A stretch of DNA of 63,938 bases, filler included, from Lenisia limosa (Eukaryota > Protista > Breviatea): assembly GCA_001655205.1 (NCBI GenBank). It is 13 parts of 13 records of this genome, joined end to end, with 100 filler letters (N's around TTAATTAATTAA, not from the genome) between each part and the next. Parts side by side here need not be neighbours in the genome. Positions count along the whole stretch, not along the records: positions 1 to 21,691 come from LPNZ01001237.1; 12 more parts are not named here. The stretch is one strand, 5' to 3'. Below, piece by piece: positions 167-21,691 of the stretch. Each line of letters opens with the position of its first letter. The stretch's first letter is position 1. Under the pieces are notes generated by a model. That model made no database searches, was not told where the DNA came from, and saw only the letters and a program-made list of their open reading frames with translations. Both the position numbers and the translations under genes were made by a program.

Positions 167-3100
167 ATGTCCCACTCATGAAGAACTCGAATATATTTGC
201 CCTCCTGATGGTAAGCTGGGGGGAGGGTACCAAATGATTCATCTTGATTATGCTACGTCAATGATAATTTTCTTAAACTGAATAGATTAAATGAACTTTA
301 TTACAAGCTTGTATATTAAAGATCAAGCCTTAATATCACAAGCCTTAATATCGTAGATGAAATTCGTTACAAGCCTTAATACCGTAGATGAAAGTCATTA
401 CAAGCCTTACTATTGTAGATGAAATTCGATGCAAACCATGCGTCAGATCTGGTCAATGCCAAGCTAATTACGGATGCTTCGATGACCCGTGTAAGGGGTT
501 CATTCATTCAAACTTTCTGGGGGAGTGAGTATTTAGTTGATGATCAGTTTTTAGACATTTCTTTTGGTACAATTATGACATTTGTTACACTTTGACAAAT
601 TAACTCTGTTCCATTGTCCCACTTTCATTTTGACTTTAACATGAATATTAAATTAATGTAAACTCTTTACTTGACTGCTTTACTGATTAACAAGTCTACT
701 ACTTTGATACTATAGTATTGCATTTTGATCAATTGTATTGCTCGTCATTTTCACACGTATAAACAGTGTTAAATCTACAACGATATCTATTTTGATTTCC
801 TCTGATATTTTGAATAATTCAATAATGAATCAATTTGACCAATTTTGACATTCCCTTCGATGACCTATTGAATATGAAATACTTGTGATCCTTACTTACT
901 CATATATTGTGAACAAAATCAATATTATGGATGTTGATCAATTCAGACGATGACTGTGTACCGTACGAAGGAGGTGCCAATTGTCCCAAAATCTGCCTCA
1001 ACCCCTACACTGGAGAGTGTGAGCCTGATAACACGGTAAAATGTTGGATTGGGAGAGTGGAGCAGGACAAACAGTAATATGGAGAATAGAGGCAAATTGT
1101 TATCAAGTAATATAAATACAATACTATCTAAAAACCATATAAGAGAGTGTGAATCTGGTCACATGTGACAATGTCAGTTTAGAGAGGATGGTTCTCTAAC
1201 ATACTTACCTTTTATAATTGTCAGTTATTAGATTCCCATTTCAACTGAAAATTTCCTGACTTTCCAGGTCCTGTCAACTGTCTACAATGTTCAGGATCGG
1301 AGTGTTTCATTTGTGAGCCGGAGTACTACCTAAGCTTCGGAGCTTGCATTCGTGAGTGGATTGTTTATTTACACTATGTTACATTGACTTGGATTCCTAT
1401 GAAACTGTTGAGTCCCCTGAAATTTTATGGACATTTGAAGAAATTTATGGGATTTCCAAATAATGCTTGGGAATCACAAGTCGATGCGCCGTAGTGGGAT
1501 GTTATTACATGACTGCTGTGTGAGGCTTCATATTGTTCCGAAAAAGACTAATTCTCGATTTAAACTTGAAAAAATCGATCTTTTGTCTTTTTGAATTCAT
1601 CTAACCACTTAGCATGTACCAAGTGTGCTCCTGATGAAGTTGTCCTTCGTGAGTGCCAACCCGACGCAGATACCATTTGTGGAGGTAAGGTTGTTTTGGA
1701 CAAAGACATCTATAGTGACCGTGATAAGTCGACCGACTTGATATCAAATCGGTCAAGAGTTATCCCGCTGTATGCTATACATATGCGTACATGTATATAT
1801 ACATACATGAATGCACCTCAATTCAAAAGTCGGAATGCAATAATGTATTTTGAAATGCATAAATTTAACATCATGTACAATACAATACAATAAGTACATA
1901 CATTTTACCAGCTGAATGGGGGAGATAGGATGAATCAATGTTTCATAATCTGGCACAGTTCCCATAGAAAAAGTTATATGAGTAACCCGATAATATTGAT
2001 CTCCAATATTGTTAATTTATACCTAAAAGACCCACAATGCGGGGACAACTGCCTTCTCTGTACTCCAAACGGCTGTCAACAATGTGCTGATGACTACTAC
2101 ATCCACCCCAGATTAAACGAATGCAGAAGTGAGTGGGGAATCGTTATCAAATGACACTGTATTGATTATTTCTGCACTGATCATTAAGTAATCTATCATT
2201 TCTTATTATGTTCATGTTCTATTGCATTCTTAATCTCGGTTTTAATCAATTAAACTGATTGTATTATATGTTTGTGATCATTTTCATGATGTGTACCATA
2301 AATCTTAAGCAATACCGGGTGATTTTATCATATGTTATGATTTTTTTGCTAGAAAATCGTAGGAGGAAATAATTGATAATGTGGATTGCAATAGTTCAAT
2401 TTTTAGTGTGTCATTTTAAATAGCATTAGGTTGTCAACTCTTAAGCCAACAACTTTTTTACGGTTTATGACAGCATGAATATTCATCAAATAAGATTATG
2501 AAATCTACAAGTGATAACATTTTGCCTATTTATAACTTTCAGTATATCATATGATCATCAACAATTCAATAGATTCTGAAATTCAAAGGTTGTAATCTTT
2601 GTCTCTTCGGTCAATGGGCGACAAGCCACCAGTGCGACAGTAATGGCAACTACATCTGCGTGGATTGGTGAGGGCAAATCACATTTTTGACATAGTTACT
2701 AAATTATTCAATGATTATATTGATATATATACAAATATGGTGACTGATAGAAATGCAAACTAAATTTGCATATTGGCAGAGAATGATGGCCCCATTCAAT
2801 CCCAAAAATGTCAGAATCTCTAATAATTCTTAAGAAATAACCAGTAGTTTTCGGATTACAAAGATCTATTTACTATACCTTTTGTGTGATAGTAATAGAT
2901 TGTTACGCAAACTCACGGGATAGCAATTAAAACTAACGCTGTTTTGATTGATACCATTAACGATTCATTTGAAAATGGTATCTTAATTGCTTCGAGTCTT
3001 TTTATGGACTGAAATGAAAGCACTTTATTTTGAATAGTATTACCAAATTCTTGGAACATTCAGGATATTATTTCAAATTTTCTTGGGACTTATTAGCTTG

Positions 3101-6100
3101 TATATTGCGGCTATTATTTACCAACCCAGCACTGATTGCCGTTCTGGACAGTATGTCCTTTCTGAGTGCGGTCCTTTCAGCGACACTGAATGTGAACGTG
3201 TGAGGGTAGTTTGATGGGGTGGTATAGGATGAAAATAATGGGGGTATGAGAAAGCGCCAATGCTTTAGTCATATTTAATGACTCTGTGCAATTACTGTTT
3301 TAAGAAACTAATTAAAGTGTCTCTCATGAATATTAGCAAATACAAGTCCAATTCACCTCATTATAGAATATATATCTAGATATATTCTAGTATATAACAG
3401 GAATTGCAGCCCATATGTGGAGGGATTATGCGGGATTGATAATGCTATTATTATTGATATTGTTTTTGTATTTTGTAGATTTTTGAGTGACTATTCAGCC
3501 TGTACCACTTGCCCCGAAAACCACTGGACTCAATCGGGTCAATGTCCAAATGGATCATATGACTGTCAAGAATGGTGGGATAAATAGTGAGACCTGTTGT
3601 TAATGGTATGATGAATAGTGTAGTGGGGATTGTTGATGTTATGATGAATTACGGTAGTGGAAATTGTTCATAATAATTATATTGTAAGGTAGCTTATGTT
3701 GTCATACCAGCATTTCAATTTATATTTACAACACATTTACAGTTCACAAAACTCCGAACAAATGATATGAGAGTTTACATTTGGAAAAATGATCCAAAGT
3801 GATGTCAATAACTAATACTTTTTGATTCTTAGACCATTTTTTATCTCAACCAATAATTTCTGCAGCACCTTCTGCGATATCGGTTTCTACGAAATCCGGC
3901 CATGTACCTTGTTTAGAGATCGCCAATGCAAGCGTATGTCTCATCGTCAATTTTTCCAAAATCATGGTGCATCAAATTTCATAATTATTATATGCTTGGG
4001 ATTCCCAATCCCAACTTTATCATAAGAACCCCTGACAATATGCAAGCCATACACCCAAAAAAATATTTTCTCAAATAGATTCTTGGAAATAGCTTTTTGT
4101 GCTAATAAGTGTGGTTACTTAGGTCACTTATTTTGAATTTTTCCTGAATGGGCTTCTAAATTTAGCAATTTTACTTGGTTTCTCAATTGTAAACAATATT
4201 CTGAGTGACCGCGATAAGTCCTGAAACGACTGATTAGGGATGTAGCTCAAATATGTATCAGTTCTTCTTATGATTTGTCATGAATTTGCCATAGTTTATT
4301 TCTCCAGAATGTGAAGTTTGTCCAGCTGGCCAGTACACTAACTCTCAAACCTGCTCTTCTTCGGGATCATATGATTGCAATGATTGGTTGGTGGGGGTCT
4401 ATTTGAATACAGAGTAATTGGGAGATATTTAACTAAAGAATGGTTGGGGATTAAATGACTAAATTAGGTGGATGGGGATTTTAAGCTTGGCTTTTACCTG
4501 ATAATCTAATTTTGAAATAGAGTAGAAGTGCTTCTAATTAATTTTAATTTTTTTGATCCATTTTTGATGCACATTAAGGAGGTTGATTGGTGGGGTGGTT
4601 TTTAGCGGGTTTTTTGAATTTTTCGAAAAATGTAACGAGCAAACTTTGGTAATTTTCATTCTCAAAATTTAGCACTATATGTAGAGATGGTCAAGTTGAA
4701 GTCAGCCCTTGTGAACCATTCTCAGATCGGGTGTGTCAAGGTGAGCTGGATACTTTACACACAAATGATTCTTAACTGTATAGTAGTTCTAATCTGTAGT
4801 TAGCTATTTTTGGGTTTTTGGAGCTAAATACAAGTCTGACGCTGTTTAAGATGTTACTTACAATATTTAAAATTGCTTTCAGCTAAATCCACCTCACGAG
4901 CAGGATTTAGCCAAGTACAAAAAAGTATATCTCAAAATTTTGCCAAGTACAAATTGAGCAAAATACAGCTAAATGCTGAAATATTAAAAGCTCCTGGTAT
5001 CCCACTGATATTAGGACCAAGTCCGCCCCGCGATGGTTGATTACATAGTGTTTAATGCTGTTTCTCATAGTGTTTTAGGGTGTACACTGTGTGACCCCGG
5101 GTTCTATTCCGAGAGTACCAGCTGTGACTCCTCTGGTGAATATTCCTGCAAGCCCTGGTAGGGGGAGACATTTACCGGTTACTCCAACTAAAAGAGCGGG
5201 CACTTAGATTTTTTAGATGAGTGTTATAGGGAACTAGCAATCTCTTTACGAGTGAAAGGTCTTTAAATGGTTCCCTCTGATTGTAAAAATTAAATCCTCC
5301 AAATTTCACAATTAATAATAAACAAAAAACAATTCAGATAATAGAAACAATACATAACAAAACCAAAAACCTCAAAAATACCTCTACCTGAATATATATT
5401 AGTTCACCTAAATTTTATCTGTTCAATTATATCCGTTCACTCATACTTTATCTGTTCACACTCATATGTTAGGTCAGTTCACCTCCATACTTTATCTGTA
5501 CATGCCACCAGAAAATACCTCCATTCACCACGCTTACAACTTCACCCATTTACACAAATTCACTCCCCTCAGAGTAGCCAACAGAGTTGATTCTGGGCTT
5601 TTTCTTTTCATAAAGTGTTCATATTTACCCTCCTCTCCAGCTCAGAATGCCCCCCGGGATATTCTGAAGTTGTTCCATGCCTCCCCTTCTCTGACAGACA
5701 ATGCGAGAGTATGTCAATGATATTTCACTACAACATCAACTATATCTATGTATTTTATCAAAAATACCATTCAATACTTGAATGTATGAGTTCTATTTTC
5801 AAAGTTTATATTTTATCATAATATTATTTTTTATTTCGAAGATAACCTGTATATTGTTATTAAAGATGCGAGATTGTACTCTTAATGAGATGTAGAATGC
5901 AACGAATGTCCAAATGGATTCTACTCTGAAAGCGGAACCTGTGTAAACGGTTCTTACGAGTGCAAGAAATGGTGAGAGATGTTGAAAGAGAATGATTGGA
6001 CATTGTTGAAAGAGATGATGGGTGATATGGTGGGGGAAGAGCAAAAAAGTTGGGGAATGTGGTGCACAAGTTCAAGAAATGGTGGAGATACTGGGCTTAA

Positions 6101-9100
6101 AAATGTCTTTATGAAAATATCTCAAATATTTGCATAAAACCCTGGGAAATATGGGCATTTGTGCTTCGGTTCATATTACCCTCTGCAGCAAAGACTGTCT
6201 TGCGGGAACCTATGAAACAAGTCCTTGTTTACCCTTTGATGATCGGAAGTGCTCAAGTAGGTGCTGTGGCTAGGCTAGGGCTTCACTTCGGTTCGAAAAA
6301 AGACTGAATGTCTCGATAAATCCTTGAAAACAATCGATATTTCACCAGTATTTGTCGAACCGAAGTGAAGCCCTAGCTGTGGTCGTACACAAAGTTGTGA
6401 GGCTAATGATTGGTTGAATTAGTATATTAGATTCCTGTATCTTTGATAAGGGTAATATTGTGAACAGCTTCGCCTAGATACATGCTTTTTTGATCAATCT
6501 TTATAAAATTTTGGTTATAATTTCTTATTTTCCATTTTTAAACCAATTTGTGCCCCCACCTTCACAATCATTCCACCCCCTCTACAGACTGCCAATTATG
6601 TCCTGATGAGTACTATTCACTCTCTCCCTTCTGTCCGAGTGGTGAATACTCTTGCCAAGAATGGTCAGTGGTCATCCTGATAATGTTGAATTAGCAAGAG
6701 AAAAAGACTGGAAATAACATACAGTTATTTTCCACTCATCAATATGATATGTCATATCCACTGTAATCGACAAGTCTCAGCATTACTCTCTGGTACACTG
6801 AGATAAACTCGCGTTATCTTCCTTATTTCGATTTGAGAAGCAAGACTTGAAAACTCTGAAATGTAAATTCTGACTTTCTGTTTGCAAATTTAACTCGACT
6901 ACAGTGACGTATGTCCTGTGGGCACCTATGCAGCAAGACCTTGCCTGCCATTCCAAAACCGTGTTTGCAGAGGTATGATTGGGTTTTTCAACGATTCTTC
7001 CTTGTTTCATATTATTTGATCTACAATTGAAAAACTTAATATGTAATAATATGATAATCTTTCTTTGGGATCCTGGTTTCAATAAAAACTTGACTGCAAC
7101 AAAATCCATTCATTACTCATGTTCCATAATTCTTGAAGGAGGTGTGTTGTTTGAGTTTTGTGCATTACATGCTGTTCTAAGTGTAACGACAATTTTCCAA
7201 TGACAACATCCGCACAGCTCTATAGTTCACAAATAAGTATCCAAATTGACAACAACGATTATATTGTTAGACTTCAACAACACTTGGACATGTTACACTT
7301 TAGACTGCCAACAATGTCCTCCTGACTACTATGCCTCCAGTCAAGACTGCATCAATGGCTCTTATGATTGCCTAAGATGGTAGGTAGTACACTACTACCG
7401 CACGTCGACTTGTGATTAAAAGCATAACATAGTAACGTTACTTATTCGTATTATTACCAAAGAAATTTTGGTTTAGTTTCCATAACTCTGATTACAATGG
7501 GTGAACAACCATTGTCCAACATTTGAAAACAATTTGCGCTACTATTGTTGTTATCAAATTTACAAACTGTGATCTTTTGAAGGTCTTACACTTTTGTAGC
7601 AATTGGAGGGTATGGAACTAAAATGTATTATTATCAGAGATTTTGGAGTTATGTATATTCTCATCAATAAATGCAAATATTCCACCAACTGATATTGTTA
7701 ATTCATTTTTTGGGTCCTCTTAGTTCAATATTAGCCCTTAAAGTTGTTTAGTGTTTCACAAGCATCCTTGTACCTTTCATGCTCAAAACACCCCTTCAGA
7801 ATATATTCATAAGTTATCCTAACCCCACAGCACTCCATGTCCCGAGGGATACTACGAGACAGTGCCGTGCACTCCTTTCGCCGATCGCGTTTGTCGTGGT
7901 AAGCTGTGGACAATACATTTCGATTCAAATTCTAATGATAAAAAATAACTGAAAATTGTATTGTGATATCAAATAGAGTGGTAAATAATACTGCTTGTGT
8001 GTGTTTTGACCAATTTTTCGTTTCTACCCCCCCCCCCCCNNNNNNNNNNNNNNNNNNNNNNNNNNNNNNNNNNNNNNNNNNNNNNNNNNNNNNNNNNNNN
8101 NNNNNNNNNNNNNNNAATGCCCAAGTGGTGCCTATGACTGCGAACCATGGTGAGTCTTTTGGTGGGGAAATAATAAATTAACATGGATGGTGGGGTTTTC
8201 GGTGGCAAAAGATGGTTAAATTCAACGCGCTGATGTTGGGGCTTTCAGTGAATAAAACGTGGCATTGAAATGCTGTTGCAAAATATCTATAAATCAGGAT
8301 TTGAGAATACAAGTCTGCTTTCAATTCATTATTCTCTTTCACCATGCACTTTATTCCTTCATCACTCATTAATGACATTCATATTTTCAGTGTAATACTT
8401 TTCAACACTTTATTCCATTTTATAACTTTATTAACTTTCACCGTGTAATACTTCCAGTACGCCTTGTCCAGAACGGTATTATGAGACCCGTCCCTGCGGT
8501 CCCTACACCAATAGAATTTGCTTACGTTGGAGGGTATTCGATAATGTTGACCTACAGTGACCGGGATAAGTCTTGACCGATTTGCTTTATAATACCAGAC
8601 GATCATATCAATTGTGTGGACATAATTTTGATTTGATCATCTGGCATCATTCGAAGCGAATTGATACACGAAGATAACACCTTGGTTCTCTCTCTAGTGT
8701 ATCGCAGTGTCACTGAGATTTCACACGGTGCATTTACTTGGAATTCCCGTATACTATATAGGAATCATGAATTTCTTCATTTTTATAAGATTCCTTGGGA
8801 TTCTCATATAAAATATGGGAATACCACCGTTTTCACAAGAATCCTAAGTCGATGCTCCGTAGTGTTGTCGATCAATTGTCGTTCGACTGGATATGAGGTA
8901 TCGTATCATAGTACTACTGAAAAATGATAGCGAATTTGTGTGAACGATCCAAAACGTAATAATAAAATATTTTGGTGGTAGTTAATGATTAATAAATGAG
9001 GAGTTGTTTAAGTTGATTGTATTATTTGATTTGTTCCTCAATCAATTGATACAATTGCATTCTTGTTCTCAAAAAACAGTTGATTTATTTATCCAAATGC

Positions 9101-12100
9101 TTACATCCAACAGCGTGCCAGGTTTGTCCTGATGACTACTACTCCCCAAGTAATAACTGCGCTTCTGGCTCTTACGACTGCAGACCCTGGTAAGTGGCGT
9201 GACCCTGGTGTGTCTTTGTATTTCTAAACTAGCATATCTCTCATTGAGAAAAACAGTCCATTTTTGATATTTCTCATATTTACTTAATGACAGACTTGTA
9301 AATGTCAGATAACAAGAGGGTTTCTCCAAGGTGTCCAAGTTTCAGTTTTACTAACAGTTGACAATTATCACAAGAGTAATTACTTGGTGTATCATATTAC
9401 TATGTTGTAACACAGCACACGTTTGAAAAAATCCCAATATGACCTATTTCAGCACACCTTGTCCAGAAGGCTACTATGAAACTGAACCTTGCACCGAATT
9501 CAAGGACAGAGTCTGTGAAGGTTTGCATAGATATGGGATGATGAACACCTAGTCACCCCAACCAACACAGTTGGGGTAACCAGGTGCATTTCTCCAGCGA
9601 TATACCTTGGGTTCATTTCTCTTCGAAATGGAAATAATTCGTATCATATAGCCTTACGGTGAACCAATGGAACTCGTCTACTCGCGAGCGGACTTGGTCC
9701 TAATATCAGTGGGATCCCAGCAATCATTCACTCAAACAAAAACAAAGAAATGGACAACATATTGATTGTAATCCTTCATTAATATAGTTGGAGATATATT
9801 CAGGTTCATCAGGTTTGTTTTGTTTTGTCCATCTCTATGTTTACCACCATTCAACCCCTCTTGCACCCTCTTTTGTTACTCCCTTTACATTATCTCCTTT
9901 ACCTCACAGAGTGTGAGCCTTGCCCAGAGGGGTACTATTCTGAGTCGGCTCTCTGCGTCCCCGGTACTTATGACTGCCGCAAATGGTAATTTGGGCTTAT
10001 TTAAACAAGGGAGTAATTTATGTCTGCAATTATAATTAATAATGGTATTTATATCATATGACATATGCTATGAAAAGACAAGACAATCTGCAATGTCGAT
10101 TATTGAAGCACAAGATAATTCCACCCAATTTATTGACATGCCTAGAGAGTGTGATGGATTGTCAAAATAATTAGTGAGCGTTTAATTGATCAATTGTTAT
10201 TGTTGAGATATACTGTCATAATTATCAACACATACTTTAGCACCGATTGCCATGAAGGATACTACGAAGTTACCACATGTACCCCATTCCAAGATCGTGT
10301 TTGTGAAAGTGGGTTTAGATCACTTGGTCATTTACACATGCCAAATATCATTTTCTACAAAGTGACTTAACATCTAACGTCAAATGATGTGACAGTTGAG
10401 GGACAAGTCTCAGTGGTATAATTGAGTCTTCATAATAAATCAGTATCAAAGTATAGTTCCCATTAGTCATTTGATAATAATTGAAAATCCCTGATAAAGT
10501 GAAACCCTGTTGATAGTCATCAAGTTTAAAACCAGATTCTACGCATATATTCCACTGTGGCTACATTCTAAAAGACTGGTGACCATGCAGAGTGTCAGCC
10601 TTGTCCTGATGAGTACTACTCACCCTCTCGTGATTGTGATGCTGGAACCTATAACTGCATCCCATGGTTAGCTGCGATTTGGGCTTTTTAGGTTGTGATG
10701 GAGTGGAAATTTATAACATTCCATAATTAGTTGGTCGTGATGTGGGCATGTTGTAAATTAGGTTGGGATAAGCGACCTCTTTGGGACATGATTTATTGGT
10801 ATTTCATTTATTGTGTTGTGTATTCACCTAATACAATATTAATGGAGGGTTTTTTACTTCAACCCTTGGTTGGGGAGTTATGACAGGGATTTTGGATTGG
10901 TCGGTATGTCTTTTAACTGAAATACGATTTTTGAATTGGGGATTGTGATAAGGTGCTGTGGGATCTAAAACAGTATTTCTTGGTTAGGGCTTCACTTCGT
11001 TTCAAAAATAGACTGAGTTTCTCGATAAATCCTCAAAAATTCATCGATATTTCACCGATATTTTCCGAACCGAAGTGAAGCCTTACTCTTGGGGGAGGTA
11101 GGTCTAATATTGGTGGTATCCTACCCGAATTATTGATCTAAAATGTTGTTTTTTCAGAGTCAGTCATTACAAATATTTAAAGTGATATAAGCGGTATTCC
11201 ATTTGTATTTTGCTTCTACAGACTTTTTGCACAAGTTCATTGTCATTATTTAGCACAAAATGTGAACATGATGAGGTTGAAATTGAGGAATGTTCGCCAT
11301 TTGACGATCGTGTCTGCCAAGAGTGCACCCCATGCCCCCCTGGTGTGTTTGGGAAGTTTTCAGCCTATTAATAATTTTATAGGGAGACTTCGGTCTGAAA
11401 AAAGACAAACTTTTCAATATTTTTGCGGTCATTACCAATTACCAGATTTTACTGAAGCACTAAACAGAAAAATAGATATGTTTATATCTGTCATTGGCTT
11501 CAATTAAACACTCCAGTATTTATATACACATACATGTATGTAATCTAAGAATTGAATCACAATTTTAGGTACTTACTCGCGTGACGGAGTGTGCACAGAC
11601 GGGCAATACAACTGTGAACAATGGTAGGAACTGGTATTGGGTAATGGGTAGATTCCACCAAATTCTCAAAATGACATGAAAACTGATAAAACAGAATTAA
11701 CCTAATTTTATACAACTCTTGGTTCTCTTTGAATTGTTTTATCGTTTTTAGCTCTCACTGCGCTGATGACCAATATCTCTATCGCCCATGTACTCCTTTG
11801 AAGGACACAATATGTCGCGGTTAGGGGGGAGTCAAGCCTAGTTGGAATGTTGTACCGTATGGTTAGGGCTTCACTTCGGTTCGAAAATAAGACTGAATAT
11901 CTCAATAAATCCTTGAAAACTATCAATATTTTACAGGTCTTTTTCGAACCGAAGTGAAGCTTAAAGTAGGTTATTCTTATATGGTGAAATAGTTTGATTG
12001 TGACAGTATTTCCCTTTATATTTCAAAAATGTTTGGATAAATGTTATGCTATTTAATGATTTTTATATATCAGTGAAGTATTTTTCGGGCATACAGCTTA

Positions 12101-14105
12101 TTTATCGTTTAAAACTGACTCATCACAGACTGCTTCAAATGCCCTGAAGACTACTATCGGACTGACTTAACCTGTGACAACGAAGGCCAATATGACTGCA
12201 TTCCTTGGTAAGAAGGGACTTGGGCGTCTTTTAACACGTTATCTACATACTGACACTTCATTAATTACCCGTATTTTTATCATTTAAGATTGAAACCAAA
12301 ATATTGTTGTCATTTTAAGATTGACCACCCTATTTCATCATATTAATTGACACCATTTAAATACTTCTTATTCCAAATTATGACACTTCATTTTGCACAT
12401 TGCTGAAAACGCATCGTATCACTGGATAACTATTCTTGTTGGAATTTTGTTTTTGTTTGAGTGAAAGATCGCTGGGATCCCACTGATATTCGGACCAAGT
12501 CCGCTCGCGAGTTGGAAAAGTCTTGTTGACATTGCAGCACGCCTTGTCCCGAGGGATACGTTGAAGTCACCCCATGTTCTGAAACGCAAGACCGTGTCTG
12601 TGAACGTGGGTCTTGGGTGGATGTATACACGTCATTTATACCGCGAAATAGATTACAAATAATTCTTTGGCAATCATGATTTTTGATTAAACACTGCCAA
12701 GTATTCTGAAGTATATCATACTTTATATTGATTCAGGTCAAATTGATTATTATTTTGAAATATTTTAAGTATTCTATTTCTTAGAAAAATTGACCTTTCA
12801 GCTGTATAGTGCAGATTAATTTCAATAAATATATAGCTATATATAAGTATTGATAATACATACATTTTACATGACAGTTATTATATAGCTAGTACTATAC
12901 TTGATTTGATAAGTATAATGTACATTTAAATGTTTTAATTTACATAATATTTTAAAAGTAACATAACAGGGTTTTTTACAAGAATAGTATAATAATCTCT
13001 ACAGCTGTCCAATGTGATGTTCCATACTGTTTGCAATGTGTAGAGGGCTATCATGACAGGTGGGTTCATTATTTTAGCATCACCTTTTGACTTGTCATTA
13101 TAATAGTAGGATATGATGTATATTAACGGTATTTGACATGTTTGGTGGACTGTCATATACTAAGTGATGAATTACGTAAGGCTATTAAATGGTAATTACG
13201 TAAGACTATTAAATTAAATGACCATATTCATGATTCAATTAGGGCTTCACTTTGACCCGTAAAATGACTGAATATAAAATATCGATATATTTCTCTATTT
13301 ACAGACATTTCCGCAACTTAGCAAATCCCTAGATTCCATTTATTGCAATTTATTGGAACAGGTGTGAGGTATGTGAAGACAACTTCTATTTGGACGTGGA
13401 CTTGACGTGCCAAGAGAGAGGATGCAAAATGCTCGTGGGTTTGGGGAATTTGTTCAAAAAACTACAAAAAAACAAAATAATAGCTTGATGTTTCCATACA
13501 ATAATGGACATAGCTCTAATCATTGGACATATTATTGTGGGAACCACATCGCTCTCGGGAATATTGACATATTTATTCCATGGTTTGTATTTCTGTTATT
13601 CTCTTTGCAACTAGGGATAGGGATTCACTTTTCTCTTCGTAAAAAGATTGTTTTTATCGAAAAATCTTCAAAGACTATCGATATTATTGTTCTTCAAATC
13701 GAATGAAACCCTACATACAGCTCCCTCTATTTCTTCTCGGCCTCTCTTTCATGACTGCCCTTGAATGTTCAATCCTCACCACTATCACCGTATTTCAATT
13801 GTTCTTTTAAATATGGGATTTCCAAATGCCGTAGTGTTCCCTATTTCAGAATACCAATTTTTACTCACCCTTCACCATTTCAAATTGTCAATTATTACCC
13901 ACTGTTCTCAAAACTCGTGTGTTGTCAGCCAACAGAGTTGATTTTGGGCTTTGTTTGTTTCATCATTTTTACCCCCACCTAGTGTGTGAATGGCCGCAAG
14001 GCCTGCCTTGGAAAATGCAGTGAGGGAACCACATGCAGAGGACTATACCTCAACAACGTCCTCAAATCATGCCAGTGCTGTGAATGTGACGACTTACTTG
14101 GATAA
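167..14105 (+). CDS. Large Cys-rich protein (>=842 aa, 5' end outside or unresolved): N-terminal furin-like/TNFR-like repeats, 13 tandem 48-49 aa TNFR-like units, Cys-rich C-terminal tail, no TM segment seen
   Basis: 34 GT-AG exons join in one frame: 167-210, 947-1042, 1268-1351, 1613-1684, 2030-2128, 2589-2667, 3130-3197, 3499-3574, 3866-3933, 4308-4386, 4673-4740, 5079-5157, 5641-5708, 5896-5971, 6189-6256, 6588-6663, 6905-6972, 7304-7379, 7831-7898, (gap)8116-8149, 8458-8525, 9114-9189, 9453-9520, 9910-9985, 10241-10308, 10591-10666, 11254-11342, 11569-11623, 11752-11819, 12129-12207, 12538-12605, 13005-13059, 13362-13434, 13983-14105 (TAA). Repeat pattern CxxCPxxxYxxxxxCxxGxYxCxx-CxxCxxGxYExxPCxPFxDRxC; the second half matches the TNFR c6 pattern (e.g. 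CTPCPEGYYETVPCTPFADRVC). One exon is partly in an N gap. Confidence 0.9.
338..430. repeat. 31-bp minisatellite x3 (intronic)
   Basis: ACAAGCCTTAATATCGTAGATGAAATTCGTT-like units start at 338, 369 and 400. Confidence 0.85.
1372..1496. mobile_element. CACTA-like MITE, degenerate
   Basis: Left end CACTATGTTACATTGACTTGGA; right end CACAAGTCGATGCGCCGTAGTG (reverse complement CACTACGGCGCATCGACTTG). Shares its right end with 8722-8864, 13810-13835 and about 14530-14640. Confidence 0.6.
1711..1772. mobile_element. Tc1/mariner-like MITE, degenerate
   Basis: TA-TAGTGACCGTGATAAG...CTG-TA; homologous to 27836-27915 and 50551-50628. Confidence 0.55.
4994..5033 (+). repeat. 40-bp palindrome-rich dispersed repeat; other copies at 9681-9720 (-) and 12472-12511 (+)
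   Basis: Consensus CTGGGATCCCACTGATATTAGGACCAAGTCCGCTCGCGAG; three near-identical intronic copies, one inverted. Confidence 0.8.
6276..6375. mobile_element. hAT-like MITE, subfamily 1
   Basis: 21-bp perfect TIR TAGGGCTTCACTTCGGTTCGA / TCGAACCGAAGTGAAGCCCTA; flanks GCTGTGGC (6263-6270) and GCTGTGGT (6376-6383). Confidence 0.85.
6376..6480 (+). repeat. Intronic repeat family A (about 110 bp, no TIR)
   Basis: GCTGTG..AGAGTT(G/A)TAAGGCAAATGATTGGTTGAATT...AGCGTGATGGTGTGGACGGCTTCGGCCA; further copies near 19144-19285, 20174-20215, 28922-29005, 29070-29120 (-), 40668-40790, 41615-41705, 44017-44112, 48664-48690, 51843-51862 (-). Confidence 0.75.
8722..8864. mobile_element. CACTA-like MITE
   Basis: Left CAC-ACGGTGCATTTACTTGGAAT, right ATCCTAAGTCGATGCTCCGTAGTG; imperfect ~22-bp TIR ending in the CACTA reverse complement. 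Confidence 0.65.
10985..11085. mobile_element. hAT-like MITE, subfamily 1
   Basis: TAGGGCTTCACTTCG...CCGAAGTGAAGCCTTA; flanking 8-mers TTCTTGGT / CTCTTGGG (6/8). Confidence 0.85.
11864..11964. mobile_element. hAT-like MITE, subfamily 1
   Basis: TAGGGCTTCACTTCGGTTCGAAAA...TTTTCGAACCGAAGTGAAGC; right tip degenerate. Confidence 0.8.
13240..13300. mobile_element. hAT-like MITE fragment (left half)
   Basis: TAGGGCTTCACTTTG...GACTGAAT...ATCGATAT. Confidence 0.55.
13618..13713. mobile_element. hAT-like MITE, old degenerate copy
   Basis: TAGGGATTCACTTT...ATCGAAAAATCTTCAAAGACTATCGATATT...TGAAACCCTA. Confidence 0.6.
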
Positions 14106-14883
14106 CCTTGATTGAGTGGAGGTGGTTAGCTTTATTGTTCTTTGTTTATTGTGATATTCTGGACAAAATTTGACTGAATAAACTGCTACTTATCCCAAAA
14201 TTATCTTTGGAGGGACTCGAGATGACAGAGTGGATATGTAGATAGCAACAACCAATAATTCACCAATTTTAACTGCATTGATGGATTATTACACATCATC
14301 TTTAGTAGTTAAGAAAGTGTCGAAGTGAAGAATTCTAAAAAAACAGTGATAAAGACGTGTACATCTGTCATTTCCAAGTTTATAATTACAAGGAGGAGTT
14401 CAGTGAAATGAAAACATATAATTTCCGTGACTAATTCCAATTCTGCTAACTTGAGTTTAGGAATTTAGCTTTTATGTGGGAATATATTATCATATGATAT
14501 CTTTATACTATAAAAAAGAAAAGAGAAAAAACTTTGGCAATCCCATAAATTCAAATTTCCATAAAATTCTATGGGATCCCCATGTAAAATATGGGAATTA
14601 CAACGTTTTCACAAGTATCCCAAGTCGATGCGCAGTAGGGTTGATTGTGGAATTTAGCATGTGGGAATATATCATATGATAGCCAATATGTACATATCAT
14701 ATCGACCAAAACCCTTGCTGACACCCCCCAAACAATCCCAGTGTCAGTTACCCCAAACACCATGGCTCAGCCATCACCAAAAGTATGCCTTCTCTCTTGA
14801 TTGCTTTTGATGATTGTCTTGCGTCTTCAACCTTTATAATTGGTTCTACATTCCCATTTATGAATTGGTTGCGCTGTTGTTAC

Positions 14884-14970
14884 TAGGGCTTCCCTACGGT
14901 CCGAAAAAGACCGGTAAAATATCGATATTTATCGAGGATTTATCGAGAAATTCAGTCTTATTTGGGACGA
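14884..14970. mobile_element. hAT-like MITE, subfamily 2, right end lost
   Basis: TAGGGCTTCCCTACGGTCCGAAAAAGACCGGTAAAATATCGATATTTATCGAGGATTTATCGAG. Confidence 0.75.
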
Positions 14971-15089: not shown

Positions 15090-15186
15090 TAGGGCTTCAC
15101 TTTGGTTCAAAAAAGACCGGTAAAATATCGATAGTATGACGATTTATCGAAAAATTCAGTCTTATTCGAACCGAAGTGAAGCCCTA
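15090..15186. mobile_element. hAT-like MITE, subfamily 1
   Basis: TAGGGCTTCACTTTGGTTC...GAACCGAAGTGAAGCCCTA. Confidence 0.85.
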
Positions 15187-17099
15187 ATCACACCTTTTGT
15201 GTTTGCAATTAGGTTGTTTGCTGTGTGAAAGAGTGATGGCTCGTACTTGTGCCTGATCTGGGGCAACAACAGATTGAAGAACCAATTAACTTGGGACATC
15301 ATCACAGTATTCTTTTTTTTATTATTTTACAAATCAGAGTTTCAAAGCCGAAACCACCCAAAACACGCCCGCCTTCAGCCAAGCCAAAATCGGTCCCTAC
15401 TTTGGATATCAAGGTAGGGTCCCTCTTTCATTAAAGCTGATATATTTGGACTCTTTTTATCACATGTTCAAGAATTGGGAGTATTATATCCATTTTTTAT
15501 GGTGGTCAAATACTACAATTATGTTTCTTATTTTTCTGTTATCATCTTTTCTTTTATTTTATTTGATTTTCATTTTCCTTTCATTTCTTTTCATCTTTTT
15601 CTCTAAGACACCTGGCATAATGCAAATGGAATAGAGAGGTCATCAAAATAAAAATATTATTGTTCTTTAAAACAATTTACAATACATAATGATATAAGTG
15701 TTTTAGATTTAGTCGCGAATAAAAATCTCAGGAAACAGTTAGAATCAAAAACCTGTGTAAAGTTAGTTGAACAGTTTATCGCGGTGAATAAAAATCTCAG
15801 TAGGCAGTCCAGGCATGAAAAATTCTGAAAATGGTTAAAAATGGCCTGGAATGTGTGAGTGACTAACCGAGGCTGTATGAGGCCAAAGAATCAAAACTCG
15901 GCAGTAAATTTCATTCAACAGTTTATTGTGGTGAAACTCAATTAACCATTTTCGAAGTCGATGGGTGACGTCATTTCTAACTGTGGGGGGGGGGGGGGGG
16001 GGNNNNNNNNNNNNNNNNNNNNNNNNNNNNNNNNNNNNNNNNNNNNNNNNNNNNNNNNNNNNNNNNNNNNNNNNNNNNNNNNNNNNNNNNNNNNNNNNNN
16101 NNNNNNNNNNNCTAAAGCCAACACATACCATCTCATCTCCTAACGCAATGAAGAACCTTCTTTTCTCTTCCTTTTTAAACCTTCCTTCCCCTCCAACCGC
16201 ACCAATGTACTGCACAACCAAATTGGTCTAGCCGAAAAGCAGAAACGCCGAGGCCCACACTGGAAAAAAGAAAAATATAAATACTTAAATTTTTACACCA
16301 TAACTCGCTAGAGCCCACTTTGAAGATTTTGCTAACTACGTCCACTCCCACAGACTAGATATTCTAGTCATCCAAGGATTACTCGGAGCAAATAGGAAAC
16401 ATGGCACCAAGTTCACAACAGGTGCCTATCGAAATATTCGGAGCATGTTATCGGCAACCTCATACTGCTGCCCATCTTCCTGCTCCACCAATGAGGTTAA
16501 AACACGATTAGAACTCATGAAATCATCCGGTAAATGTAAAAAAAAATTATTGATTATCAGCCCTGCCCCCATCCATATCGGCGGCAATTGGCGGTGATGA
16601 CATTGGCGGGGTGCCTGGCACTGAAAAGTCAGCTACCACACCAATATTATGCAGTATATTGAATTAGTACAATATAATTAGGGCTCTGTGCAAACGCAAT
16701 TAATTAATATTGGAAAATCGAAATTTTAAGTAGGACATATTGTAACACCTCTTTCATCGTTAGTAGAGGATTCAATGGAATTTTCATACCTGAAAGAGAG
16801 AGTGCTCAGCGGATCTTAGGGGATACAGGAGGAGTAACTTTGTGCAGACAACAGGGCTGACAGAGATTTCGATCTCATTTGAACTCCCTTTCTGTGAAGG
16901 GGGTCAAAACTCTCATAAATAACTTGAAGATACCACGTCACCCCAACAATAGTAGGGATAAGTTCTAAAAAAAAATAGATCATATGTCAAAAAGTAAACT
17001 GAAAAAGCAGACAAAATTTAAATAAATAAAGCCAAACCCATATAATATAAAGAAGCATACACAAAATTGTCTCTCAGAGAGAACAATGCGACTCGGGAG

Positions 17100-18317: not shown

Positions 18318-18742
18318 AAATGCTGGCAAATGCTCCTTATTACAATGATTAAAGCGTTAATATAGTAAATTTAGGGGTTAGATAATGAATATCGCATTGG
18401 TAACAATAGACCCCCCCCCCCTCNNNNNNNNNNNNNNNNNNNNNNNNNNNNNNNNNNNNNNNNNNNNNNNNNNNNNNNNNNNNGGAGAACTCTTTTGAAA
18501 TTTTTAACTTTACTTCATACCTGTTTTCCACTTAAAGTTTATTGCTGTTCTTCTTTTGGCTTTTACGTTTAGTTGTCTCTACTTTTGAGAAGTACATCTT
18601 TTCTGAAGCACTTGACACTAATTTGAGAATCGCAGTCACTGTATTCTGTGTCAATATATGTACACCCTGTAAAAGTCCACGTTTTATCCAATTTAAGAAC
18701 CAGCTCTATTAAAGAATCTCATTCTCCAATTTACGGTTTTAG

Positions 18743-21610
18743 AAGCCTGAAGAAGAACCCATGCCGATCTTACAACAGTCCTCCAGCCTCACTGATCTTC
18801 TATCATCGTCTGACGAAGAAGAAACACGGGCCACCCAGCTCAAAAAGGACACGTCATCTCTAAACCCACTCCGATCACCCCATCGGAACTTTGTGGAGCC
18901 GGAACCGGAGGAAAAGAGCGGAATTGAAGATTCCGACAAAGTTGCCGATGTCACGTCATCGCTAACCGATCCGAATCACCCAGATAATTGGCCCGCGACC
19001 CGGGACTGGTCAGCTGGCGAGGATATCACGTGCGCGGTGCTTAAACCGATTTCCTGCTCAATTGAAACGCAGACGATTACGCCGACAGAGTGCGAGTCTG
19101 ACCGAAGTCACGCCGTGAGCTCAATGGGAGTTTTTGGGGGGCGGCTGTGTACAAGTATTCATATCATATACATCATATGTATGTTATATGTGTAGAGTTG
19201 TAAGGCAAATGATTGGTTGAATTAATATTGTACTCTAATCCAGTATCTCTTAGAAGCGTGATGGGCTGGACGGCTTCGACTTTATTTTTTTTTTCTCATT
19301 ACTCTATATTATGATATGTGTGGTGTTTGTGTTTTATTGAAGTATATCTATTTCGCTTACCCCCTCCCTCCCTCTGGGCTTTGTTTGTTTTGTTGTTATT
19401 AACCCTCGTTTGTCGTCAGTCAACGGAGTTGATTTGGGTTTTTTTTCTCATAAATTTTCCAATTTTACTCTCCTCCCAGCAATCCGAGGCAATATCTCCG
19501 GAAATGGTCCAAACATCGTCTCAAACAGTCACAGTGCCTGCACCAACGTTTGCTCGTGAGCTGGAAGGTTATGATAGTGAGCTGAATGTGGGGTATTTCG
19601 ATTGTGATTTGGGGGGAGTATTGGGTATATACTATATCTTTATGAGAAATCAATTATGATAAGGAGGGGAGGTTAGGATGATGAGCCGCAGTCCGATTCA
19701 GAGATCGGGAAGTTTGTTCCTATCCGCAAGTCTTATCTTCATAGAGTTAATTTTGGGCTCTTTTTTTTTTTTTTCATAAATTTCCAATTTCACCCCATCT
19801 GCCGATAATATTCTTCATCGAAATTTCTTTCAGTCATACCCCCTCCTCTTTTTCACTTCCCCAGCCCCCCTTCCCGAACCGGAACCGCTGTTCTTCGAAC
19901 CCGCCCTTTCCCTTTTCCCTGAGGGCCCTCCTTCTGCCCAACCAATTGTCAAGCCTTGTGGGGGGGAGATTATGAGTGACCATTTGAGGATTTAACATGA
20001 ATTATATTCTATATCTTCTTGCAATCAATTTTATGAAGATAATAATTGAAAATTGAAATTTAAGTGTCTAAAATGAGCTTCTCGTTACAATATGTCCTAA
20101 TTTAAATGATTAATTTTGTTTTTTCAATGAATTGCATTTGCCCAGAACCCTAATCATATTATACCAACTTACAAGCGTGATAGTGTGGACGGCTTCGGCC
20201 AGATAACCTTGTTTTTTATTCTCATTGCTGTATATATTCAATTCAGGGCTGAATATTTATTACGAATCTCCACGTATTCATGCCTCAGCTTTCGACCCTC
20301 CGGCTGCCCACCCTCTCACAATGAAGCCTTCCGTCCCAATTTCAACACAAACCTCATTTCCGTCCCAGATGCACCCCCAGATTCCAATAAACCAGGAATT
20401 TCCTATTAGCTCTGGCGCCAATTCATTGCGTAAAAGCGCTTTCACCAAGTCACAGCTGGTAATTGAGCCCCTCCCACCCGCTAGATCATCAGATCAACTT
20501 CCCTCCCGCGAGCAAAAGGAAGTAAAAGTTTACAAAACGCGCGTGCCACGCCAAGTTGAAGCACGAATGCGCGCGGCTGACCCCGATTCCCTCCCGCCGC
20601 CGGTCGAAGAAACCCCCGCTAAGTCACGTGACCGCTCGGTCTACAACCCAACATCCGCCTATTTACGGTCGCCGTATCGCCCGCCACCATCCCGGACCGC
20701 AGTGTTGGATACTCTTGTAGCCGCTCACGCCCTCGACAAATCTGCTTCCCGGCCCGACCATTCCGTCATCGCCACCTCGCTGAAGTCCATGTCTGCCATG
20801 GCGGCCGCAGGACATCCCTTATTAGGCAAGTCCGTTTCCGATGCTTCCGTCATGTTTCCGGGACACACCCGGGAACCTGCGGAGGCGATATTGCCGAAAT
20901 TGACTCGGAAGAAGAAAGTCAGAAAACAGATTCCGACGGTAAAATACGTTCGACGCAAACTGGCGTCCGCGTTGCCCTCTGATGACCCCCTTAATGAGGC
21001 CCTACATTCCCTCGGCGAAACTACTCCCCCAGTTACGGAGACCTATAAATGGGCTGAAGTAGTTGAAATGCAAGAGGTGGAGGAGGAATATCCCATCTCG
21101 GAAGCGGAAGTGAACCAAGCTTCCGACCCGATACCGCTTCCGACAGACCCTCAGATGACGTCAATGCTTCATGAGGCCTCTCAGCTTCTTCCCGTACAAC
21201 CGTCGCCCGTTGCGGAGTTGAATTCGGCTCCGCTCGCTTCCGAAGGCTTATTATCGGCTCTCAAGCGAGCCGATGGAATAACAGCCGAAATGAACCGACG
21301 ATGCGCCGACGTAAACGCCACCGCATCCCTCACACGAGAATCTGCCCTAGATTTACGCCAAAGTCGACGCCAAAGCTGCGCCAAACGCCAGAAGCTCACC
21401 CGGTCTGGAAAAGCACTCCAGGTGAAAGAGGCGCGGCTACGCGCGGGACTTGCGCCTGCACAATGGTCTGATTCTGATGGTTTTGACAGCGGATGGGAGG
21501 ATTCAAGCTGCTCCGAGCCGGATTGGATGGTTGATGACGATGTTATGGTACCGGATATTCACTGGACCCAGCCAAGGAAGAAAAAACCGCTTCCGATGAC
21601 GCCTTTGGAA
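18743..21610 (+). CDS. Large low-complexity Pro/Ser/Glu-rich protein, unknown function (partial)
   Basis: Exon-like blocks at about 18743-19114, 19480-19570 and 19833-19955, plus a 1.36-kb stop-free GC-rich exon (about 20247-21610) ending at GAA|gtgggg; no domain recognised. Confidence 0.6.
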
Positions 21611-21691
21611 GTGGGGGGTTGGGTGATCTATTCACAAATTTGGGGTTTTTTTTATAACGTATAATAAACTATTCTACTGTAGTTATTCTCT

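Follow-up and report, generated by a model that had tools for sequence, protein, structure and literature searches.

The window considered here, that is, the whole stretch of DNA that was analysed (63,938 nucleotides (nt), filler included), consists of 13 joined parts from 13 records of the genome assembly of the breviate protist Lenisia limosa (GCA_001655205.1), and the first of these, LPNZ01001237.1 (positions 1 to 21,691), carries the gene that is the subject of this analysis. The window is AT-rich eukaryotic DNA, with a G+C content of 33–40% across the gene region. On the + strand, between 167 and 14105, 35 small exons can be joined across 34 splice junctions into a single frame of 866 codons, which has no internal stop and closes with a TAA; an AATAAA motif, read from the sequence, follows at 14178-14183, 75 nt past the stop. 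The reading favoured here, to which we give a probability of about 0.72, is that this is an intact, single-copy, intron-dense gene for a cysteine-rich, acidic, extracellular-type protein of at least 866 amino acids (aa) with 13 cysteine-rich domains (CRDs) of the tumour necrosis factor (TNF) receptor, or TNFR, type.

The exons were found by scanning AG...GT intervals for open frames, and cysteine (Cys)-rich, stop-free segments recur on this strand every ~350–400 nt. Splice borders are canonical AG and GT throughout, the donor has G at position +5 in 33 of 34 cases and the acceptor tracts are 64% pyrimidine. Two exon classes alternate, one of 68 nt (n=12) and one of either 76 nt (n=7) or 79 nt (n=4), and the phases alternate just as strictly, the 68-nt exons having one leading and one trailing base and the 76/79-nt exons two of each. 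Because TG closes each 76/79-nt exon and C or T opens each 68-nt exon, the split codon at the junction is always Cys, the fifth of the unit. The array introns measure 187–588 nt, with an additional one of 128 nt inside an irregular unit, and there is about one intron for every 75 coding nt; the genetic code is the standard one. An earlier description, which we refer to as the sequence-only reading, had proposed 34 exons, with sizes of 68 and of 76 or 79 nt, an exception at unit 12 and a unit-8 exon lying partly in a gap. The scan recovers these sizes exactly and the small-exon model stands, although the count here is 35 and three of the exons are tentative. Its description of the gene as invisible to open reading frame (ORF) scans also holds, in that a bacterial-style ORF list of the window shows it as short fragments only. 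Nine ATG-started ORFs from the gene region had no match in the protein collection, and an Rfam search of the window returned no match.

The body of the gene is formed by 13 tandem units of 48–49 aa with eight Cys each, equivalent to 26 four-Cys modules, in which the Cys spacing is C-x2-C-x10-C-x6/7-C-x2-C-x2-C-x9-C-x7-C. The first module (C-x2-C-x10-C-x6/7-C) lies on the 76/79-nt exon and the second (C-x2-C-x9-C-x7-C) on the 68-nt exon, both exon types sharing the start C-x2-C-P-x-G-x-Y; there is thus one disulfide module to an exon, with introns at the module borders. In the irregular unit the intron lies 21 nt farther downstream, so that its exons measure 89 and 55 nt, still 144 nt in sum, and a degenerate extra unit is found 5′ of the array (exons 1268-1351 and 1613-1684). 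All eight Cys are retained in every complete unit. Identity between units is 32–69%, and over 45 unit pairs the mean proportion of synonymous differences (pS) is 0.82 (minimum 0.66, thus saturated) against 0.41 for nonsynonymous differences (pN), while paralogous introns are unrelated apart from copies of mobile-type repeats. The saturated pS, the lower pN and the unrelated introns together indicate an old duplication in which the Cys framework has been maintained; the array is therefore an old tandem duplication of an exon pair with its introns, with the Cys framework under purifying selection, and the old exon-pair expansion of the sequence-only reading is upheld. The same reading had the repeat-region introns, of 187–588 nt, share no sequence; the range is right, the 128-nt intron aside, but dispersed repeat insertions are shared among them, namely a ~100-nt element resembling a miniature inverted-repeat transposable element (MITE) and two shorter elements, often inverted and at non-homologous positions.

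The identity of the domain is given by profile searches. Spliced unit 9 (48 aa), the one unit scored whole, matches Pfam TNFR_c6 at 39.0 bits (E 1.1e-9; residues 5-47 on positions 1-39 of the 39-position profile), above the gathering threshold of 29.4 bits. Translations of single 68-nt exons score 25–29 bits on the C-terminal half of this profile (positions 19-39), where each of the 14 exons of that type matches at E<=0.01, the best at 5e-7. When a profile of the 68-nt exons was searched against the PDB, 33 of the 34 matches were TNF-receptor family chains (DR5, TNFR1, TNFR2, CrmE, RANK, DR6 and CD40), the remaining one being the CRD of plant CRINKLY4. The units had been called TNFR-like from the start, and the unit-9 score, the half-domain matches and the PDB result agree with this. 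The ‘furin-like repeats’ placed upstream of them were not found: the Furin-like hidden Markov model (HMM) had no match, even at E<=10, to exons 1268-1351 and 2030-2128 (tested singly) or to the unit, on which the label was rejected as unconfirmed, and exon 1613-1684 is itself a TNFR half-module. CRDs are described by a modular scheme of A-type and B-type halves (Naismith and Sprang, summarised in PMC6224509). Judged from its Cys pattern, each unit would comprise a two-disulfide A-type module and a B2 module, one per exon. A TNFR_c6 domain typically has three disulfides (1-2, 3-5 and 4-6) in an elongated ladder fold, and the two extra Cys per unit imply a predicted fourth disulfide.

The array is interrupted in the assembly by a gap of 76 N within a unit-8 exon. 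A 2204-nt Logan contig from DNA run X1, made with another assembler, spans 6346-8578 and is identical to the window except that it omits 29 of the 76 N at 8039, so that the two sides of the gap are continuous and 47 nt apart. This length can accommodate the 42 nt missing from a 76-nt exon together with 5 nt of intron end, or, for a 79-nt exon, 45 nt and 2 nt, and the left flank ends in a run of 13 C (8027-8039) that is a plausible acceptor tract; the frame across the gap is consistent with the model, the letters inside it being unread. As X1 may be the source sample, the bridging is read-level rather than independent support. Depth in X1 is flat at ~32 over the gene, which is single-copy by this measure, and the contigs show zero differences and are broken only at dispersed repeats; uniform depth and breaks of this kind speak against an assembly artefact made of collapsed or invented repeats. 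All three assembly gaps adjoin C or G homopolymers (the C13 tract, a G18 at 15985-16002 and a C11 at 18411-18423), and the probable cause is that sequencing or assembly failed at these runs, rather than that large inserts are missing.

The visible product of 866 aa is 16.5% Cys, has a pI of 4.2 and contains few N-glycosylation sites. It runs from a short CxxC-rich region through 13 tandem TNFR-type CRDs to a short Cys-rich tail and the stop. No hydrophobic or membrane segment was found in this model, and the C-terminus, ...CQCCECDDLLG, is not hydrophobic, resembling neither a membrane tail nor a glycosylphosphatidylinositol (GPI)-type signal. A death domain or TRAF region was likewise sought, with no exon and no Pfam match, and the sequence downstream to 18.7 kb carries no such coding signal.

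Long arrays of TNFR-type modules have been recorded in other eukaryotes. Searched with a profile, a library of 1.84e9 representatives yielded 168 matches, and the best matches to the spliced model reach E values of 1e-59 to 1e-96 at only 25–33% identity, driven largely by Cys. The relatives are giant proteins in which many TNFR_c6 matches are combined with VWA, laminin G, TMEM132 and cohesin domains. Those with names include Monosiga brevicollis XP_001743798 (3677 aa), Barroeca monosierra EP01147_P003157 and Guillardia theta XP_005833984, and others (P0001, P0033, P0027 and P0009 among them) come from metagenomic or transcript-like contigs. These proteins share with the Lenisia product long tandem arrays of TNFR-type four-Cys modules, large size and an apparently extracellular nature, but they repeat a single B2-type module with a period of 24–25 aa, whereas here two types alternate within 48–49 aa, and none of the VWA, LamG, TMEM132 or cohesin domains that they carry is present in the 866 aa visible here, where the 5′ end is cut. 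The library contains no 13-unit orthologue, which would far outscore the best match, and the first-module signature C-x2-C-x10-C-x2-4-G-x-Y-x-C occurs in none of ~160 retrieved relatives. A degenerate DNA pattern for CPEGYYET found three unrelated loci only, a C-type-lectin-like exon, a GC-rich bacterial-type contig and an AT-rich CxxC protein. According to PMC4979521, choanoflagellates have CRD proteins (44 and 84), as do bacteria and plants, and death domains are absent from all of them. The contrast with known biology implied by the sequence-only reading was thus overstated, as CRDs and long arrays are on record in choanoflagellates and a cryptophyte, and CRDs in plants.

Other systems resemble parts of the unit. 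The CRINKLY4 CRD of Physcomitrella (PDB 7A0K), identified in bioRxiv 10.1101/2020.08.10.245050, is a non-animal TNFR-like module reached by the 68-nt-exon profile, but the match is weak (E 0.028) and it is a single CRD beside a WD40 domain in a receptor kinase, with no array. The C-x2-C-P-x-G-x-Y start of the 76/79-nt exon is found in ELAPOR1, Ephrin_rec_like (GCC2_GCC3), the furin-like repeats of R-spondin and the NCD3G domain of the CaSR, and R-spondin and CaSR were also matched in the PDB by this exon; the profile matches to ELAPOR1, Ephrin_rec_like and NCD3G nevertheless lie under the curated cut-offs, at 18.3 or 12.7 against 33.2 bits for TNFR_ELAPOR1_6th, 15.3 or 11.6 against 23.1 for Ephrin_rec_like and 15 against 38.9 for NCD3G. 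Among the metagenomic sequences, a 508-kb contig (L002, JGI 3300027828) encodes at 3001-8778 a 1925-aa relative with TNFR_c6, FXa_inhibition, Fibrinogen_C and COLFI matches, adjoining an SNF2 helicase; the contig is gene-dense and intron-free, and may come from a giant virus or from a microbe with few introns.

Several observations weigh against the reading of an intact gene for an extracellular protein of 13 TNFR-type CRDs. Taken alone, the 76/79-nt exon gives sub-threshold matches only (TNFR_ELAPOR1_6th in 7 of 11, Ephrin_rec_like in 4 of 11), and the fold and disulfide pairing of the eight-Cys unit are predictions from its sequence. Splice sites are weak in the three tentative exons (167-210, 419-490 and 13362-13434), and in searches for sequencing runs that contain the gene X1 was the only DNA run to turn up, and the one RNA run of its study, X2, covers none of the exons with a contig. 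The gene lacks its 5′ end: the visible model starts in phase 1 with no signal peptide visible, and a start exon (ATG) or signal peptide was looked for in 1-166 and not found, so the gene is cut off by the contig edge, upstream of which further domains or an N-terminal anchor may exist. Any function proposed for the protein rests purely on analogy.

The truncation bears directly on one alternative, in which the visible array is the C-terminal stalk of a larger adhesion or matrix protein whose VWA, laminin G or TMEM132-type domains lie beyond the contig edge. The phase-1 start with neither start codon nor signal peptide in 1-166 is what this would predict, and the best relatives join their TNFR-module arrays to VWA, LamG, TMEM132, cohesin or kringle-bearing neighbours; nothing is visible beyond the edge, however, and since the identity of these relatives is only 25–33% and stems largely from Cys, their architecture need not transfer. 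A larger protein of this kind is therefore possible, if somewhat doubtful. Far less probable is the idea that the gene belongs to the TNF receptor superfamily proper, for instance as a decoy-type soluble receptor for a TNF-like trimeric ligand. Here the likeness is real, with the six canonical Cys in TNFR_c6 register and a unit-9 score above threshold, an A-type plus B-type build, a 68-nt exon that encodes a B2-type module with the signature C-T-x-x-x-D-x-V-C, and PDB matches to the ligand-binding CRDs of DR5, TNFR1 and TNFR2. The lack of a membrane helix has a precedent in osteoprotegerin, a soluble receptor without one. Typical TNF receptors nonetheless have one to four CRDs (PMC6224509) against the 13 here, and their CRDs lack the two extra Cys because of which the N-terminal half of the Lenisia unit resembles a two-disulfide module. 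Furthermore, no membrane helix, death domain, TRAF motif or other cytoplasmic signalling domain is present, the nearest relatives are giant proteins that are not receptors, and CRD proteins outside Planulozoa are without death domains (PMC4979521). A TNF receptor proper was rejected on the number of CRDs and the absence of a membrane helix and a cytoplasmic domain.

The sequence-only reading had also pointed to surface coats, and a variable coat antigen in the style of the Giardia variant-specific surface proteins (VSPs) or the ciliate immobilisation antigens would account for the high Cys content, the CxxC periodicity, the length of the array and the few N-glycosylation sites, all in a sample that is metagenome-like. 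It is hard to reconcile with the other evidence, as no HMM relationship to such proteins was found, with no Pfam VSP match in any exon or unit tested, the genetic code is standard, the gene is single-copy by depth and the units are old and diverged without recent homogenisation. The C-terminus is of neither membrane nor GPI type, and on this and the lack of a family match an anchored coat protein was rejected; the idea of a coat function is not borne out, and we regard this explanation as improbable. The remaining alternative, a decaying or never-expressed relic or a repeat assembly artefact, draws on the lack of RNA support and on the gap inside one exon. It is largely refuted by 866 codons and 34 junctions without a stop, by the eight Cys kept in every complete unit, by pN well under the saturated pS, and by contigs from another assembler, which show the same arrangement at even depth and run across the gap. 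A pseudogene was accordingly rejected.

Table 1. Coordinates of the exons, the array gap and the neighbouring features, in positions of the window.
Feature	Position	Strand	Remarks
Tentative exon 1, 44 nt	167..210	+	Phase-1 start; acceptor 6.3, donor 10.5
Tentative exon 2, 72 nt, Cys-rich	419..490	+	Weak donor; acceptor inside 31-nt tandem repeat
Exon 3, 96 nt, Cys-rich	947..1042	+	
Exon 4, 84 nt, CxxC-rich module	1268..1351	+	No Pfam match
Exon 5, 72 nt, degenerate TNFR half-module 5′ of array	1613..1684	+	TNFR_c6 28.9 bits, profile 18-39
Exon 6, 99 nt, CxxC-rich	2030..2128	+	Earlier label ‘furin-like’; no HMM match
Unit 1, 79-nt exon	2589..2667	+	C-x2-C-x10-C-x7-C module
Unit 1, 68-nt exon	3130..3197	+	TNFR B2-type module
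Unit 2, 76-nt exon	3499..3574	+	
Unit 2, 68-nt exon	3866..3933	+	
Unit 3, 79-nt exon	4308..4386	+	
Unit 3, 68-nt exon	4673..4740	+	
Unit 4, 79-nt exon	5079..5157	+	
Unit 4, 68-nt exon	5641..5708	+	
Unit 5, 76-nt exon	5896..5971	+	
Unit 5, 68-nt exon	6189..6256	+	
Unit 6, 76-nt exon	6588..6663	+	
Unit 6, 68-nt exon	6905..6972	+	
Unit 7, 76-nt exon	7304..7379	+	
Unit 7, 68-nt exon	7831..7898	+	TNFR_c6 28.4 bits
Assembly gap, 76 N	8040..8115	.	True length 47 nt; should hold acceptor and first 42-45 nt of unit-8 exon
Unit 8, visible 3′ 34 nt of 76/79-nt exon	8116..8149	+	..CPSGAYDCEP + TG; directly after gap
Unit 8, 68-nt exon	8458..8525	+	
Unit 9, 76-nt exon	9114..9189	+	
Unit 9, 68-nt exon	9453..9520	+	
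Unit 10, 76-nt exon	9910..9985	+	
Unit 10, 68-nt exon	10241..10308	+	
Unit 11, 76-nt exon	10591..10666	+	
Irregular 89-nt exon	11254..11342	+	68-nt module plus first 21 nt of following 76-nt module
Irregular 55-nt exon	11569..11623	+	Remainder of that 76-nt module; 89+55 = 144 = 68+76
Unit 12, 68-nt exon	11752..11819	+	
Unit 13, 79-nt exon	12129..12207	+	
Unit 13, 68-nt exon	12538..12605	+	
Exon 33, 55 nt, CxxC motif	13005..13059	+	
Tentative exon 34, 73 nt	13362..13434	+	Weak acceptor
Terminal exon, Cys-rich tail	13983..14105	+	End ...CQCCECDDLLG; stop TAA 14103-14105
MITE-like element copies	6276-6375, 10985-11085, 11864-11964, 13240-13273 (partial), 14884-14968, 15090-15186		Four in gene introns, two downstream
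Short dispersed repeats	9680-9746 / 12446-12512 / 4994-5026; 8779-8867 / 14555-14643; 5576-5608 / 13927-13959		In introns and downstream
Three ORFs, 144, 113 and 431 aa	18761-19195, 19318-19659, 20369-21664	+	

Repeats are scattered through the introns and the sequence beyond the gene. The MITE-like element has terminal inverted repeats (TAGGGCTTCACTTCGGTTCGAA...) and is possibly TA-flanked; its depth in X1 is ~1.2e5, compared with ~32 for unique sequence, and there are therefore thousands of copies in that data set, while its terminal repeat, sought in JGI metagenome contigs, was absent from them. The short dispersed repeats are 33–89 nt long with 82–97% identity, some of them inverted, and several coincide with high-depth bins in X1. 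Near the 5′ end, a 31-nt tandem repeat in 3–4 copies (335-437) overlaps the acceptor and first bases of tentative exon 2. Farther downstream, the three ORFs may belong as exons to a single gene, whose product would be disordered and rich in Ser and Pro; this region has a sub-threshold match to MBD_C (19 against 27 bits), the 431-aa ORF has no homologue besides itself among 5.8e9 proteins, and the same three ORFs lie on ENA ERZ3820729 NODE_2614 (7009 nt). Six-frame segments of 14.1–21.7 kb and of a 1.3-kb extension (ENA contig L001) revealed no conserved gene, and the window contains no marker gene.

Returning to the favoured reading, of an intact gene for an extracellular-type protein with 13 TNFR-type CRDs, its history began with tandem duplication of an exon pair and its introns long ago, after which the Cys framework was kept by purifying selection. 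TNFR ectodomains and the multi-domain relatives in protists suggest, by analogy, that the product may form a long, rigid, disulfide-laddered rod. Scaled from the usual size of TNFR ectodomains, 13 domains would measure roughly 30 nm. Such a rod could leave the cell as a secreted protein or stay attached to its surface by an unseen N-terminal part, and its role would then be that of a spacer or binding scaffold, in adhesion, in the matrix or in capturing ligands, rather than that of a signalling TNF receptor.

What is new here is a variant architecture, as the TNFR-type domain family and long module arrays are already known; this, and a function proposed by analogy, limit the importance of the finding. 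A bolder version of it, which is speculative and rather unlikely, would see in this gene of a non-animal, barely sampled eukaryote a separate subfamily in which complete eight-Cys TNFR domains, each a two-disulfide A-type module plus a B2 module, are chained 13 or more times, one module to an exon, and spliced as cassettes. Neither 68 nor 76/79 nt is a multiple of three, but the exon pair, at 144/147 nt, is, and skipping of whole pairs would therefore keep the frame; if this occurs, the locus could yield rods of graded length or varied binding surfaces. Prokaryote-style ORF calling misses the gene, and metagenome-derived protein catalogues therefore under-count proteins of this kind. The locus illustrates clearly how long extracellular repeat proteins are built up by duplicating exon pairs, with one unit recording a 21-nt intron shift. 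For the TNFR-type family, it adds an architecture of full, eight-Cys CRDs repeated 13 times, and this bears on whether long arrays outside the receptor family, or older than it, made use of complete TNFR CRDs and not of single modules alone.

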